Shown: in pieces, positions 1 to 29,807 of the stretch
How the letters are laid out: each line of letters opens with the position of its first letter
Position numbering within the stretch: the stretch's first letter is position 1
Origin: Basidiobolus meristosporus CBS 931.73
Lineage: Eukaryota; Fungi; Basidiobolomycota
Reading direction: 5' to 3'
NCBI GenBank assembly: GCA_002104905.1
Contig: MCFE01000197.1
Coordinates: 1-64,000, forward strand
DNA: 64,000 bases
The notes under the pieces: generated by a model
The model's database searches: none
Seen by the model: only the letters and a program-made list of their open reading frames with translations
Told to the model about the DNA's origin: nothing
Translations under genes and position numbers: made by a program

Positions 1-3000
1 TTCTCCTCAGAATAATTTTCGAGCAACTTGTCTTCACAGTCAATTATACCGGACATAGACTTGTCAAATTTAGCCATGTATTTAGATGAAGTAACCACAA
101 CAATAGCATGAGTCTCGCTGATTATAAATGAGCTACGTGCTTCTGGATAGTTGGGATCCATGGGAACATATGCTCCACCAGCTTTGAGAACTGCTAGCAT
201 AGCTACTATCATATCAACTGACTTGTCGATACATAGGGGGACCATGGACTCGACACCTACTCCAATCTCGGCAAGATAGTGGGCTAGTCGATTTGCCCTA
301 CTGTTCAACTCATGGTACGTGACAAACTCGCTGTCCTCGAACTGAACCGCTATGTTGTTGGGTGTTCGCACAACCTGTTCCTCGAACAGCGTGTGAATAC
401 ATCCATGGTGAGTGACATCGGCACTAGGTCCACTCCATTGTTGTAGCAGCTCATGTTCGTGAGCAGCGATGACGCTGAAGCTTCCGATCAGCGTATTTGT
501 ATTGCTGGCAATACGTTGCAGCGCTGTCTTCAGATGCTCAAATATCCACTTTGCCTCATCCTGAGACACAACATCCTCGTCGTACAACATGGACAAGTGG
601 TGCTCTCTCTTCCCAGTAGACAACTCCACGACTAGCGGGTAGCTTGCTGGCATGGCTGCCTTGACTTCCATCAGCCCAATCGACTCAAAGGTATGTCGCT
701 GGTCTCCTCCCGTGAGGTTCTGAACAACTAGCAAAGTGTCGAATAATGAGTCCATCTGACCGTTGCCCCACAGTTTCTGGATTTCCTGAAGTCCAATGTT
801 CTGGTATTGGCACTGCTCCAACTGAGCAGTATGTATCTGACTCAATACATCAAGGAGAGTCGAATCATCCTCAAGGTTCACTCGCACGGGTAGCGTGTTG
901 ATGCAAGGCCCACATATCTGGTCGATTCCACCCACTGGCACATTTCGGCCCGAGTTGACCACCCCGAATACGACATCCGAGCTACCAGTGTGCGCTCTCA
1001 GCACCAAAGACCAAGCCAGGTTCATTACCGTAGCAATGGTGATATTGTGCCTTCTTGCTAGCTCCGTGATGTCCACCTGGACCCGTTCCTCGATGCAGCT
1101 ACGCGTCTGCGGCTTTGTGGAAAACGATGTGTGCTTGGAGATGTGAGTTGCCGCTGCGCCATCTAGGACCCTTGACCAGTATTCTAGGGACTTGCCTCTA
1201 TCTAGGCCAACATTGTACTCAATAAAGCTAGCATATGAAGGCCTCTGTGGTAGATCCAGTGCGCGATATGCCCTCACAAGATCTTCAACGATGAGACCCA
1301 TGGACCATCCATCGTACAATGCATGGTGGATGGTCCATATGAGGCATCCTCCAGGTTGCTCACCACGCAACCAGGTAAAGCGGGTCAGCAGCTTACCTTC
1401 GGCAATTCCTTCCTCTCGGTCCTTCTGGAGTGTTTCTTGGATCTCGTGCTCCATCAAAGTCGCACTACCAGTAGCAATCTCCCTCCAGTCGATCATATCA
1501 TCCGATAGGACCACTTGCAATCCATTCAGGTGTGAGTTGCCACGGCTCACAAACACGATGGTAGTGCGGAGAATAGGATTTGATTTGATCACCGTTGACC
1601 AGGCCTTCTTTAGGCGCATGATATCAACACTCTCATCAAAGGAAAATACGTGCTGTGTGAGATACTCGGAGTTCGCTCGGAGCCCCAAGGCAAACAAGCC
1701 TTCTTGCAGTGGGACACATGGGTATACATCCTCGACACTGCTGATGGGGATCCCGTTGTTTGGACATCCACATTGAGCAGATCCTCGACCTCACCTGGCT
1801 CCAATTTGAGCAGCGAGAATTTCTCGATCTCCTTTGCTCTCACCCCATTGCTTACTGGAGAAGGTACCAGTTTGGCCATTTCTGTAATTGTCGGATGTTC
1901 AAACACTTGCTGGACCGTGATTTGGTAGCCTTGCTGGCGGGCTGCTGCCACAAGCTTGATGGCCACAATTGAGTCACCACCTAGACTAAAGAATGAGCTG
2001 TTGGTTCGGATCTGACTCTCCGCGATAATCAAAACTCTTGACCACAGCTTTATCCAACACAGCTCCATTTCGGTAGCAGGCAAAGATGAAGTTTCACCTT
2101 CAGATTTACTTAACGCATGCAGTTCCTCCGCATTCATATTATTAAGCATCTTCTTCAGCTCGCCTCGGTCTAGTTTTGCCATTCACATTAGTAGGAACTC
2201 GGCGAATTGGAATAATCATGTTCGGCTCCATATAGGATGGCAATTTTGTAGTAAGTAAGGTTTGTATCTCAGCAATCCACGTCATAAATTGCTCGGTCTC
2301 AGCAGCATTGTATAGCATAGTGCCCACGCGCTCAGTTAGCTGCTCATAGAAGTTTACCAGTGCAACCAAAATCTTGCGATTTGTTTCCTTATCAACAATC
2401 AGTGGAAGAACACAGGCTCTTGAAACCATTGGGTGTTCGTGAAGAATATGCTCAATCTCATCCAGCTCAATCCGCAATCCATTCAGCTTTATCTGGTTGT
2501 CCATTCTCCCAATCAACTCCACCGTCCCATCCATGTTGAATCGAGCCAGGTCGCCGGTGCGATACATTCGTTCTGCAGGGCTGTCTGGATTCGACACAAA
2601 GGCTGCAGCGGTCAGGTCGGGTCTGTTTAAGTATCCACGAGCCAACTGTGGACCAGACACGCAGAGCTCACCCACTGCACCCAAAGGAACTGGCCGTAGT
2701 CGGGAATCAAGAATGTATATCCTATTACGCCCAAATGGTAAGCCGATATTGCCACAAGACGTGCTTTCTGTGACCCGACGATTTACCATGAAAGCTACAG
2801 CTGACTCGGTTGGTCCATATGCATTGCTCAGGTGAGCCAGTGAAGCCCATCGGTCTTTCAAATCTGGAGTCATCATTTCACCGCCAAGGCACAGCCTTTT
2901 AACATGACAGTTCTTGTCACATTGCAATAAACTGGCTACCGAGGGCGTTAACATCAGAGTATTCACATTCATTACGGCAATCATCTCGTCTAGCTTAGAG

Positions 3001-18531: not shown

Positions 18532-18604
18532 CGAGGCACATGGGACTCGAACCCACAATCCCCAGATCCGAAGTCTGATGCCTTATCCATTAGGCCAATG
18601 CCCC
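18532..18604 (-). tRNA. tRNA-Arg (anticodon TCG), intronless
   Basis: Reverse complement GGGGCATTGGCCTAATGGATAAGGCATCAGACTTCGGATCTGGGGATTGTGGGTTCGAGTCCCATGTGCCTCG folds as a cloverleaf with A and B boxes, followed by a T-rich Pol III terminator. Confidence 0.97.
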
Positions 18605-26207: not shown

Positions 26208-27684
26208 ATGATGAGAGGAGAAGCGTCAGTCTCAAAGCCAATCAAGCTCCTTTTTTTCCTCTACGTATTCCTCTCTTTTCTTTATATTGTCCACTACTTC
26301 TACGAGATACCGAGTCCAAGTAAGTTCAGCGTCTTATCAGTTGCACGAAACCCCAAGTGAACACGAGTCCTGTCCTAGATATTCTCAAGATCCCACGCTA
26401 CACCCAGGAGTTGACGTTGGATGATGCAGGTAACCAGTGTCCCGCGCTTTCCACCGAGTGCCTCTTCTGATTCACCAGTTGCTAGACTCTATGTTCGGCG
26501 GCCACAATAACCGTTATGTCTACTCCAAATTATTCTCGAGCGCTATGCAGCCAAGCAACCTAGAGCCGTTTTATATCCGTGCTGAATTGATCCCCTCGCC
26601 AGACGATATCACCATCACAACGTTGATTACACCGGATCGATTTGAAGTATTTGAGAAACTCATCAATCATTATCAAGGTAACTCGAGCTACTCATTAGTC
26701 CATGACCGAAGCTTACCACCCCCACCCCTTACCAGGGCCCATCTCTGCCACCTTACATGTGGACGAAACACCTGAGAAGAGAAAAATCCTTGGAAGACTC
26801 CAAGCGATGTACATGAGAAACCCCTCGATGCGGAGATACGTGGATGTACACTTGATAGTGGATTCATTCGAAAGACAGTTTAACTACTGGCGTAATGTAG
26901 CCAGATTCTTTGCTCGGACCAAGTACATCCTGATGCTGGATGTAGACTTCTTCCCGTGCACGAACTTGCGGCAAAATCTACAGCGACACCCACAACTATT
27001 GGGCAAACTGCGAGAGGGGAATGCAGCAATAGTAATTCCTGCTTTCGAATATGGGGCGCTGGATGAGGGTCGGAATTCTGATCACTTCCCACGCACCAAA
27101 GACGCTCTAATCAAGGTGGTCCGTTCTGGACACCTTGACATGTTCCACAAGGTGTGGCAACAAGGGCACGGATCTACCAATTACACCCGATGGTACTCCG
27201 CCGATCAGCCATACCTTGTCACAGAATACACCTACAGCTATGAGCCATATGTCGTGGTGAAAAAAGATGCGGTGCCCTGGTGCGACGAGAGGTTTATCGG
27301 TTATGGTGCCAACAAGGCAGCCTGTTTGTATGAGATCTATTTATCTGGAACTGATTTCTGGGTGCTGCCCAACGATTTTTTGATCCACCAAAACCATGAC
27401 TATCCAGAGGTGACCCGTCGAATGGAGGTAAGCCAGGGCCGCAGGCTCGACAAGAAGACTACTTACTGATCAGGCTCGTCTTGTAGAGAAAACTTAACAA
27501 GCAGATCTACACGAATTTCCGGGAGGAAAGTTGCTATCGTTATTGGCGAAATGCCTTGGCCCTGGGGACTTGGAACAGCCCGCGCTCCAGCAACGCCAGA
27601 CGCGAGTGCAGTAAGATCCCGGAATTTATGGAATTACTCAATGAGTTGGATAATCCGAATTCAATCTCACTTAATTCCAATTGA
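26208..27684 (+). CDS. Glycosyltransferase family 49 (LARGE/B4GAT1-like), type II membrane protein
   Basis: N-terminal hydrophobic anchor (KLLFFLYVFLSFLYIVHYF); RNVARFFARTKYILMLDVDF (DxD); YEPYVV, DERFIGYGANKAAC; last exon RKLNKQIYTNFREE after an intron at ~27428-27487; TGA at 27682-27684. Confidence 0.85.
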
Positions 27685-27749
27685 CCATCTGACCATCCTA
27701 TCCTAATGACAAACACACTAGAGCCATCTTTCAATTGTTTATTTCCAAT

Positions 27750-27875
27750 GGCAACTTTCCCTTGCGCAGGTATTATCCTGTTCAGGTTCAAAGGGTATGA
27801 TCTCAGTCCATTTGCAGCATCCCGCTAGACCCTTACCTAGGCCCGACAGCATACCACAGGACACCCCTAGTTACC
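27750..27875 (-). ncRNA. TPP riboswitch aptamer (cis-regulatory RNA) in the 3' UTR of THI5/NMT1
   Basis: Reverse complement GGTAACTAGGGGTGTCC-[~46-nt P3 extension]-GGACTGAGATCATACCCTTTGAACCTGAACAGGATAATACCTGCGCAAGGGAAAGTTGCC. P1 GGTAACT/AGTTGCC, invariant CTGAGA, ACCCTTTGAACCTGA, P5 CAGG/CCTG with ATAATA loop, GCGCAAGGGA. It sits next to a thiamine biosynthesis gene in the sense orientation. Confidence 0.95.
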
Positions 27876-27902
27876 AACGAAAAAAATAAATTACCACTGA
27901 AC

Positions 27903-29114
27903 CTAGTTTTGGGCCTGGACCTCCAGTGCTCTAGGCAGCTCGTTCTCAACTCTGTCCTGGCTACCTAATCCGGTTTTGGGTGCATTTGGGTCAACCTCTG
28001 GCAACAACGGCCAGGTTAGAAAATCATTGGTCATGTTCTGCCTGAACGCTTCGTCAACGATGCCCAAACGCTTGCAGTAGTTGGTAACCTTGTTCCAGTC
28101 ACGCTGGACATTCTTCAAATCCTTCGAGAAATAAATGAAGGAACGGTCGAAGATCTTTCTGTTGACCGGTGTGTTCATGGCCGGCTTCAAGTCAACCAAC
28201 AGCTCGTATGACTCTTCTGGCTTGGCCTGGATGAAATCCATGGCTCTCTTGATTGCCTTCATGAACTTTGCAACCTTCTCGGGGTTTTCGTTGATGAATT
28301 TTTCGTTTCCAATGAAGAGAATCTAACGCATTCGTCAGTCAGACATCCCAAATCCACGGCCGGCAAGCACTTACTGAACAGAAGCAGCAGCATCCAAGCT
28401 TGGCAAGCTCATCGATGCGGAGCATTTGAACATCATCTCTGGGACGGCCTTGCTCAACACTCCACTCCTCCAGCTCGACCATCTGAACGTTCTCAATTCC
28501 TATTCCTCCGTCAATCACCCCCTTTTGAATAGCCCTGGTCACATTCATGCCTACTCGAACTGGAGTGTAGTCCTCGGGGGTCATGCCAAAATGACGGGTA
28601 AGCTCATCCAACTGAATCTTACCAAACTCGCCAACATAACCGATTCTCTTTCCACGAAGCGATTGGAAGTCGGTGGTGATCCCGTTGGCCGACTTGAGGT
28701 AAATCACCCCAGTGAATGGTTCCTAGAGTCCGAGAAAAGGTTTAAATCAACCCCCAACCCATCACTTCCCTTCAACAGCATAATTACATCGAGCAAGGTG
28801 CCAATGGACTTGATAGGGAATCCACGGGCTTTCCCAGCAATGGTATGAATCATGGCTTTCAAGCCAAGATCAGCCTTGCCACTGCCAATGATTTCGGTAA
28901 CATCTACAAATCGGGAAAGATTACGCAACTTGTCCAAGAAAAGGCAGTGGGCTTCTGGAACGTTGGAGATGCTTACCAGATGGGTCATTTGGCTCCAAGA
29001 TGGCCACCTTCACTCCCTCATCTGCGAAATAGCCAAGCTTGTGGGCAACAAACAAGGGAGCATGGTAGGGGGTGGCGTGCCAGTTCAATAAGCAGGTGAT
29101 TTTATCGGTAGACA
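27903..29114 (-). CDS. THI5: HMP-P synthase (thiamine pyrimidine synthase) THI5/NMT1
   Basis: [30 protein letters not shown] (PLP Lys and substrate His), [21 protein letters not shown]; three GT-AG introns; TATA-like TATATAAG ~60 nt upstream; TAG at 27905-27903. Confidence 0.96.
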
Positions 29115-29807
29115 TCGTCGGAAACCTAGAATAACAGAAAGTGTTGTTGATGCTCTGCCACCCTCGAGGAAACTCTCTTATATACCCTCCCTCTCGACTT
29201 GACGAGCCTGAACAGTGTTTGGGGTCCAACTTACGCATGCTACACCGTATCGACATAATTATCGACAATCAGGACAATTATTCATAGCATTTGGGTGGCT
29301 TAAGAAAGCCTAAGCCGAATCCCTGCCTTCCTGGTACTACCATGCCCATCGCCACTTTGAGGAGAAATGATCAGCAAAGATGAATTACCTGGATTACCTG
29401 GAAATGTGATTACTACATCCGAGATTGTAAAGCCTATGAAATCCATCAGCATCATTGACACGTGGTCCACTGCTTTCATACTAAGCAACGCGGCACTGAG
29501 ATTTCCAGCAAAGAATTCTTGGCATCATTGTGAAACCTTAATTGAGACCATCCTATAGCAACGTTTGATTTATGTGAGCATATTCCAGCAGCCTACACTG
29601 TCGCCTACCCGCCTACTTAGTCATTGTGTGGAGCGCCAATGACTCAGGTGGTGGAAATGGATATTCCATGCTATTTATTCTATAGGTGGAGGCACCCTCT
29701 CGACAATTGCCTCTGACATATATAAAACAAGCGCCTGCTGATTTCCGCCTCATTTTCGACCTTTGATGGTACGATACAACCCGCCTGCTTCAATCACCCC
29801 TACACAT

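Follow-up and report, generated by a model that had tools for sequence, protein, structure and literature searches.

The NMT1/THI5 gene of Basidiobolus meristosporus carries a TPP aptamer in the terminal exon, that is, in the 3' UTR, of its mature mRNA, and the same placement after the stop codon recurs in B. ranarum and in Mucoromycota. What is new is the combination: aptamer class and gene are both known, but they occur together in an architecture that has gone unrecognised and been mislabelled for a whole fungal group, and the mature mRNA keeps the aptamer. To our knowledge, splicing is the mode of action of every eukaryotic TPP riboswitch characterised so far, and the fungal ones have been described as elements of the 5' UTR or of internal introns.

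A TPP aptamer follows the NMT1 stop codon

A cmscan search with Rfam of the window, i.e. the whole 64-kb stretch of DNA analysed here, identified RF00059 (TPP) as the sole match for this class, at 27878..27740 on the minus strand (59.6 bits, E 3.6e-9; the gathering score for RF00059 is 54.3 bits). The match spans the full model (positions 1-105); P3a is absent, P3 has 44 additional nucleotides inserted, and all upper-case consensus positions are matched: CUGAGA, P2 (GGGG/ACCC) and P4/P5 (ACCUGA..GG.UAAU.CC.GCG.AGGGA). No further TPP match turned up in the 5' UTR, in the introns or in the rest of the window. From P1 to P1 the aptamer comprises 126 nt (27750..27875; this and all following features lie on the minus strand unless stated otherwise). 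The P1 helix, which has 7-8 bp by predicted folding, consists of the strands GGUAACU (27875-27869) and AGUUGCC (27756-27750). The CUGAGA motif on the pyrimidine-sensing side (27801..27806) is aligned to invariant consensus positions, and in the pyrophosphate-sensing arm P4/P5 (27759..27786) the highly conserved positions are all present. The extended P3 ends in an apical loop, AGGUAAGGGUC (27828..27838), that resembles a consensus 5' splice site or U1 binding site.

The coding region preceding the aptamer on the same strand (27903..29115) is composed of four exons (29115-28977, 28903-28787, 28721-28375 and 28322-27903), whose joints were taken from the cDNA-like contig described below, and ends with the stop codon TAG at 27905-27903. 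The 1023 spliced nucleotides encode a protein of 340 aa that does not differ from ORX94732.1 (annotated as NMT1-domain-containing protein, Basidiobolus meristosporus CBS 931.73), and the translated exons are matched by Pfam PF09084 (NMT1). A spacer of 27 nt (27876..27902) separates the stop codon from P1; it holds a U-rich tract, a near-repeat of the P1 5' strand, UUCAGUGGUAAUUU (27901-27888), and the hexamer GUAAUU (27894-27889), which is similar to a 5' splice site. The poly(A) signal AAUAAA (27738..27743) is located 6 nt past the P1 3' strand. On the plus strand, a convergent Glyco_transf_49 gene (26702..27684; Pfam PF13896, E 8.9e-46; probable intron 27428-27486) ends with its stop codon at a distance of about 41 nt to the poly(A) site of NMT1, and no minus-strand gene was found in the window 3' of the aptamer and before this gene.

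These results agree with the original prediction, made from the letters of the DNA, which had placed a complete sense-strand aptamer with an extended P3 at this position, starting 28 nt after the stop codon of a THI5/NMT1 gene (P1 begins 27 nt past the TAG), had seen no aptamer in the 5' UTR or in the coding introns, and had named the Rfam covariance model as the check, which gave a significant match above the gathering score.

The aptamer is retained in the spliced mRNA

In a public run labelled 'DNA?', which shares its study with the probable source runs, a cDNA-like contig of 1231 nt (word depth about 3400) matches the window with zero mismatches in four blocks, 27725-28322, 28375-28721, 28787-28903 and 28977-29141. 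Since each of the three gaps between the blocks begins with GT and ends with AG when read on the minus strand, this contig is a cDNA of the spliced NMT1 mRNA. It is unbroken from the stop codon across the aptamer and stops about 13 nt beyond AAUAAA, at 27725, which we take as roughly the site of cleavage and polyadenylation, the mRNA 3' end; between 27701 and 27434 the same run has a depth of zero. The retention of the aptamer in a spliced contig with such an end places it in the mature message's 3' UTR, as had been predicted. The aptamer is thus linked on the sense strand to a thiamine biosynthesis gene and lies inside its transcript. No 3'-UTR splice joint was seen in B. meristosporus in this one RNA data set, the assembled contigs of which hide minor isoforms. 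At the opposite end the mRNA starts at approximately 29141, and the 5' UTR has neither an intron nor an aptamer; as it starts only 26 nt before the ATG, there is no room for a leader intron of the ascomycete type.

Conservation in B. ranarum

In B. ranarum (L018) the aptamer is found 93 nt past the NMT1 stop codon (59.7 bits), and the glycosyltransferase neighbour is shared. The aptamers of the two species are 87% identical, and 91% in the half from CUGAGA to P1, whereas the identity is 52% in the spacer, 40% downstream and 38% in the last 85 coding nucleotides. The difference between the aptamer (87%) and its flanks (38-52%) indicates selective constraint on the aptamer, i.e. purifying selection. 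The apical loop of P3 is invariant on a changed supporting stem, and AAUAAA is also kept. The GUAAUU of the B. meristosporus spacer is absent from the B. ranarum sequence in this comparison.

The arrangement is shared with Mucoromycota

Relatives were gathered by searches with the last exon and then with a Mucor exon, and the encoding contigs were examined. In this survey of NMT1 3' flanks in early-diverging fungi, proposed along with the original prediction, a sense-strand TPP match was present 3' of the NMT1 stop codon in B. ranarum and at every Mucoromycota locus examined, and in all 12 distinct relative sequences the stop codon is followed by the aptamer in sense orientation. The matches score 61.8 bits in the Mucoromycota-like loci L001-L006, 61-62 bits in L007/L008 (98% to Syncephalastrum racemosum), 53-54 bits in the Umbelopsis-like L009-L011, 56.7 bits in L012, 45.9 bits (E 2e-6) in L013 and 59.5 bits in the Mortierellaceae-like L085. 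The L012 aptamer is letter for letter the published 118-nt sequence of Mucor circinelloides BCHG01000036.1 (PMC11683625 suppl.); judged by this sequence, L012 is Mucor circinelloides. The linkage of NMT1 and aptamer is kept in relatives with different neighbour genes. In Neoconidiobolus thromboides, no aptamer was found within 2.5 kb on either side of NMT1.

All seven genomic Mucoromycota-like sequences, representing five or six lineages, have one layout: stop codon, 3'-UTR intron, aptamer. The 5' splice site of this intron is located 0-23 nt past the stop; at the Umbelopsis-like loci this last intron begins a few nucleotides before the ORF stop, and the isoforms differ there by few C-terminal residues. 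The intron is about 95-210 nt long, has a distant branch-site-like motif and ends with an acceptor 1-18 nt before P1; in L012 its borders are TGA/GUAAGU ... AAACAG/, followed by the aptamer. At the genomic loci of Mucoromycota AAUAAA usually occurs 18-36 nt past P1, and 11 of the 12 distinct 3'-type sequences have it 6-36 nt downstream of P1.

That the Mucoromycota 3'-UTR intron is truly spliced is seen in one genome/transcript pair. At 99.5-100% identity, the metatranscript contig L017 corresponds to the genomic locus L013, but the coding intron and the 3'-UTR intron are missing from it, with the aptamer kept in the terminal exon. Two other metatranscript contigs, L014 (97.7% to Podila verticillata) and the Mortierella-like L015, contain the full spliced CDS, the aptamer 29-40 nt past the stop and then AAUAAA, and L015 ends in an A run.

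Aptamers of Ascomycota-like loci are at the 5' end

As a control, 80 NMT1 loci were collected by one metagenome scan with the NMT1 alignment, searched with a regular expression for the aptamer core motif and assigned to lineages by the best named protein match. The core expression and an E-value mode of Rfam were used because the Rfam gathering threshold missed most ascomycete aptamers with a long P3. Among 71 Ascomycota-like loci, 28 had the aptamer core on the sense strand, 15-269 nt before the coding match, and none had one downstream of NMT1; at the seven Basidiomycota-like NMT1 loci the core expression found no aptamer. At the sole Mucoromycota-like locus of this survey (L085) the aptamer was downstream. 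Rfam confirmed each of the 11 5' matches that were tested again (E 3e-7 to 1.8e-3), along with L050 and L085, and one more 5' aptamer overlooked by the expression was found (L054). Since Rfam confirms the matches of the expression, the 5'/3' split belongs to the lineages and not to the method, and the contrast with ascomycetes drawn in the original prediction stands.

In a quick maximum-likelihood tree of NMT1, Basidiobolus is sister to Mucoromycota and apart from Dikarya (SH-aLRT 87, not decisive), so that the 3'-type genes of Basidiobolus and Mucoromycota group together. Judged by this gene tree, which is without chytrids and gives no direction, a single change of the aptamer position suffices.

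Comparison with known riboswitches

Published classes of fungal TPP riboswitches comprise elements in a 5'-UTR intron, in an internal intron and in a single-exon 5' UTR, the 3' UTR being named only for eIF5B in Postia (PMC5882874). The supplement of the same survey lists an NMT1 element of Mucor circinelloides at a distance of 47 nt to the gene model's 3' end, yet labels it 'Intron, Type III', and another supplement labels the same sequence '5' UTR, Type I' (PMC11683625). In L012 this aptamer lies after the stop codon, behind the 3'-UTR intron, unlike both labels, which are hereby corrected. A literature search that did not include Moldovan et al. 2018 retrieved nothing on riboswitches in Basidiobolus or on a 3'-UTR switch of NMT1 in Mucoromycota.

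The element shares with the ascomycete NMT1/THI4 riboswitches (Neurospora; type I, PMC5882874) the aptamer class, the NMT1/THI5 family and the position in cis on the sense strand, but it is located at the opposite end of the gene, and the ascomycete switches act via alternative 5' splice sites and uORFs. The 5'-UTR intron with alternative donors and a uORF that defines type I has no counterpart here, where a 5' UTR of about 26 nt contains neither an intron nor a TPP match. Fungal type III elements are situated in an intron between coding exons, with an in-frame stop, and the choice of splice site there shortens the protein (PMC5882874), whereas the Basidiobolus aptamer is in the terminal exon after the stop.

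The original prediction had called the placement similar to that of plant THIC. This holds for the location, since the aptamer follows the stop codon of a gene of the pyrimidine branch of thiamine synthesis in a 3' UTR, and in the Mucoromycota relatives a 3'-UTR intron directly adjoins it. It does not hold for the mechanism. In plant THIC, P2 contains the acceptor, P4/P5 is the pairing partner of the 5' splice site, the processing site is in the intron upstream of the aptamer, and the highly expressed isoform lacks the aptamer (PMC3597705, PMC9544697, summarising Wachter 2007 and Bocobza 2007). The fungal gene is NMT1/THI5 and not THIC, its AAUAAA is 3' of the aptamer, the abundant mRNA retains the aptamer, and no 3'-UTR intron was seen in B. 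meristosporus. A regulated intron with its acceptor in P2 and a 5' splice site complementary to P4/P5 was not found, the Mucoromycota acceptor being before P1, and the mRNAs end past the aptamer instead of at a major poly(A)/processing site in an intron upstream of it.

The nearest match to the B. meristosporus layout, in layout and not by descent, is provided by diatom aptamers whose 3' UTR has no intron and whose poly(A) signal coincides with or adjoins P1 (PMC9544697). These differ in belonging to stramenopile THIC genes or to genes of a ThiY-like NMT1 subfamily, and in being experimentally unresponsive to thiamine.

Predicted folding and possible mechanism

The near-repeat in the spacer (27901-27888) and the segment 27757-27744 (the P1 3' strand and 7 additional nucleotides) are predicted to form a 14-bp duplex of -16.3 kcal/mol (z -5.2 against shuffles). 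The unconstrained minimum-energy fold of the B. meristosporus 3' UTR contains this helix, extended into P4/P5, at -58.9 kcal/mol, and the fold with the aptamer enforced has -57.9 kcal/mol, a cost of 1 kcal/mol. So small a gap is expected of the near-balanced two-state design of a riboswitch, and the modelling suggests that the Basidiobolus 3' UTR is a two-state switch. In B. ranarum a different upstream sequence is complementary to that species' own, changed P1 3' strand (z -2.5). When the aptamer is enforced, the predicted unpaired fraction of AAUAAA changes from 0.54 to 0.31 in B. meristosporus and from 0.06 to 0.26 in B. ranarum; in the folded Mucoromycota mRNAs it is flat with and without the aptamer enforced, and no obvious alternative fold was found in them.

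In Mucor, P1 is predicted to be extended by 14 bp (z -6.5) and so to bury the acceptor of the 3'-UTR intron, which suggests TPP-dependent retention of this intron. The burial is weak in the other Mucoromycota lineages, and the combined p of 0.009 is driven by Mucor alone. Three further candidates were rejected. Pairing by which the aptamer would mask the 5' splice site, in the style of plants and Neurospora, was not significant in seven Mucoromycota pre-mRNAs (z -0.7 to +0.8); an anti-P1 element inside the Mucoromycota intron was not significant either, the Mucor P1 extension excepted; and recursive splicing, considered for the L017 junction CAG/GUAAAG, involves a motif that is not conserved in L014, L015 and L009.

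The explanation that we favour, and that we consider rather probable as a whole, is a TPP-binding aptamer in the NMT1 terminal exon, representing the Basidiobolus form of a 3'-end arrangement shared with Mucoromycota, with thiamine feedback exerted at the 3' end. At low TPP the spacer after the stop codon would be paired with the 3' half of the aptamer and the P1 3' strand, and cleavage and polyadenylation would occur right behind the aptamer. At high TPP, P1 would close in the aptamer, the spacer would be displaced and the helix beside AAUAAA remodelled, which could make 3'-end formation less productive or lower the stability of the mRNA. Against this explanation, the modelled effect on AAUAAA is modest in B. 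meristosporus, opposite in B. ranarum and absent in Mucoromycota. As for the mechanism, we roughly assign control of polyadenylation or of the 3' end an appreciable share of the probability, though clearly less than half; cryptic or regulated splicing takes a small share, and a similarly small one falls to some other mechanism than those named.

A bolder joint reading is offered tentatively, with a modest chance of being correct. It combines a eukaryotic riboswitch without regulated splicing with the 3'-end arrangement as the original state of fungal NMT1. From within the terminal exon, TPP-driven strand exchange between the spacer and P1 might then set whether the poly(A) site at a distance of 6 nt is used, or decide what becomes of the mature cytoplasmic mRNA with its aptamer. 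The original 3' state would be common to Mucoromycota, and the 5' intron switch of ascomycetes would be a later relocation.

Alternative explanations

Regulation at the 3' end has to be weighed against the rather unlikely alternative that the aptamer binds TPP yet no longer regulates, or regulates something besides the thiamine supply, as a conserved but unresponsive 3'-UTR element. Such elements exist: diatom THIC and NMT1-domain genes have conserved 3'-UTR aptamers with the poly(A) site at P1 and do not respond to thiamine (PMC9544697), so that a conserved 3' aptamer is no proof of regulation, and the Mucoromycota mRNAs, which show no obvious alternative fold, would fit this as well. On the other hand, the aptamer is conserved far above its flanks in two Basidiobolus species, is always beside NMT1 across at least four Mucoromycota lineages and has a relative near the 3' end of a second highly expressed Basidiobolus transcript, and the complementarity of the spacer co-varies between the two Basidiobolus species. 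A plant-like switch, in which TPP would free the GUAAUU of the spacer, and splicing to an acceptor beyond 27725 would remove the aptamer and AAUAAA and yield long unstable read-through 3' UTRs, is unlikely in our estimate. It draws on the identity of GUAAUU with the hexamer at the 5' splice site of coding intron 2, on the position of GUAAUU in the spacer strand, which is predicted to be base-paired without ligand and freed once the aptamer forms, and on relatives among Mucoromycota with a real 5' splice site 0-23 nt past the stop or just before it. However, the sole RNA contig has no 3'-UTR joint and the depth past the poly(A) site is zero, GUAAUU is missing in B. ranarum, no conserved acceptor is evident, and Mucoromycota show no significant complementarity between the 5' splice site and the aptamer and lose the intron but not the aptamer on splicing.

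The 'on' isoforms of ascomycetes and plants have the aptamer spliced out or cut off. The intact aptamer in the abundant mature mRNA of Basidiobolus and in three Mucoromycota metatranscript contigs instead speaks for a cytoplasmic switch on the mature mRNA, with ligand-dependent decay, deadenylation or translation in place of nuclear processing. This seems quite improbable to us, as the sequence has no feature indicating a factor of decay or translation, nuclear events are suggested by the conserved upstream intron of Mucoromycota and by the acceptor-burying P1 extension of Mucor, and we know of no precedent for a natural eukaryotic riboswitch acting cytoplasmically on a mature mRNA. The chance that the aptamer belongs to another transcript, either that of the convergent glycosyltransferase gene or that of an unannotated downstream gene, is negligible. 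The closeness of the GT49 stop codon to the NMT1 poly(A) site (about 41 nt) means that the 3' ends may overlap, but the aptamer exists only on the minus strand, where no gene lies downstream before GT49, and the linkage to NMT1 is kept in relatives with different neighbours; the continuity of the aptamer with the NMT1 exons in the cDNA-like contig refutes this alternative for practical purposes.

With the NMT1 aptamer in the terminal exon beside the poly(A) signal and kept in the mature mRNA, in Basidiobolus and in every Mucoromycota lineage sampled, Mucor, Mortierella and Basidiobolus form a tractable system in which to ask whether 3'-end formation or the fate of an mRNA can be under the control of a natural riboswitch, and the question of whether the 5' or the 3' position is the ancestral fungal arrangement becomes directly testable. 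Drug targeting of fungal TPP riboswitches is also concerned, because in the agents of mucormycosis and basidiobolomycosis the regulatory logic would not be the ascomycete one.

A second Basidiobolus aptamer

The run with the cDNA-like NMT1 contig contains a second, related aptamer (72 nt aligned, 7 differences), which also occurs in a DNA run of a relative with about 10% divergence. In a 1759-nt contig with a depth of about 760, it is separated by 65 nt from the sense 3' end, and its P3 apical loop is identical to that of the NMT1 aptamer, atop a different stem. Judged by these sequences, at least one further Basidiobolus mRNA probably has a 3'-terminal aptamer.

P3 loop and second aptamer in Basidiobolus

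The long P3 of the NMT1 aptamer ends in an apical loop that reads AGGUAAGGGUC (window 27828-27838 on the minus strand; about 4345-4358 in L018, the B. ranarum NMT1 locus). By sequence likeness, AGGUAAGGGUC is a near-consensus 5' splice site, or U1 site, and it is unchanged in B. meristosporus, B. ranarum and the paralogous aptamer, among which the supporting stems vary. The 3'-UTR spacer of B. ranarum contains ACCCUUAC, a perfect 8-nt complement of the P3 loop, which adjoins a UACUAAC motif inside a hairpin.

A second TPP aptamer, related to that of NMT1, was observed in Basidiobolus outside the window, in contigs of the public sequencing runs X3 and X4. It differs from window positions 27752-27823 at seven of the 72 aligned nucleotides, and the transcript contig carrying it (1759 nt, with a high depth of about 760) ends on the sense 3' side approximately 65 nt beyond it. 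In another organism (run X7), an RNA contig of 2302 nt has an identical 31-nt core about 290 nt from the contig end. The host genes may be THI4 or a transporter.

Neighborhood of Basidiobolus NMT1

A glycosyltransferase-49 gene (window 26702-27684, plus strand) is convergent with NMT1, and this pair is also present in B. ranarum. Its end and the NMT1 poly(A) site (27725, minus strand) are separated by about 41 nt, so a glycosyltransferase-49 3' UTR exceeding about 56 nt would run antisense to the aptamer. The B. ranarum annotation includes an NMT1 "variant 2" (P0134, KAK9719530.1) of 281 aa from an internal methionine start, a hint that the gene may have an alternative 5' isoform. Elsewhere in the window, a tRNA gene (18532-18604, minus strand) was identified with the Rfam tRNA model at 57.3 bits; its anticodon loop is CUUCGGA.

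NMT1 aptamers in other fungi

The aptamer of Mucor circinelloides (region L012:3296-3560) is labeled "Intron, Type III" by one published survey and "5' UTR, Type I" by another. Contrary to both labels, the sequence places it in the 3' UTR, downstream of a 3'-UTR intron, since it is preceded by TGA|GUAAGU...AAACAG|. The acceptor of this intron is predicted to be buried by a 14-bp extension of P1.

At two Umbelopsis-like loci (L009:4340-4520 and L011:3430-3580), both with an MFS sugar-transporter gene immediately upstream of NMT1, the last intron begins just 5' of the ORF stop. Judging from these sequences, the spliced frame would terminate at the UAG within CGCUAGGGG of the aptamer, so that the stop codon would sit inside P1/J1-2.

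The Syncephalastrum-like locus L008 (1107-1484), a short JGI contig, retains the coding intron as well as the 3'-UTR intron. A run of approximately 80 A starts 19 nt past AAUAAA, at the point expected for the start of a poly(A) tail, and 16 other letters come after it; no A-run is present at the matching position of the related genome (L007). L008 may represent a transcript that was polyadenylated with its introns retained, or it may contain a genomic A-tract.

The Ascomycota-like locus L097 has two TPP aptamers (872-982, minus strand, and 2358-2464, plus strand), one 5' of NMT1 and the other roughly 1.5 kb further upstream in the opposite orientation, the latter presumably serving a divergent gene. 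At another Ascomycota-like NMT1 locus, a 5S rRNA gene (L074:621-740) lies about 1.7 kb upstream.
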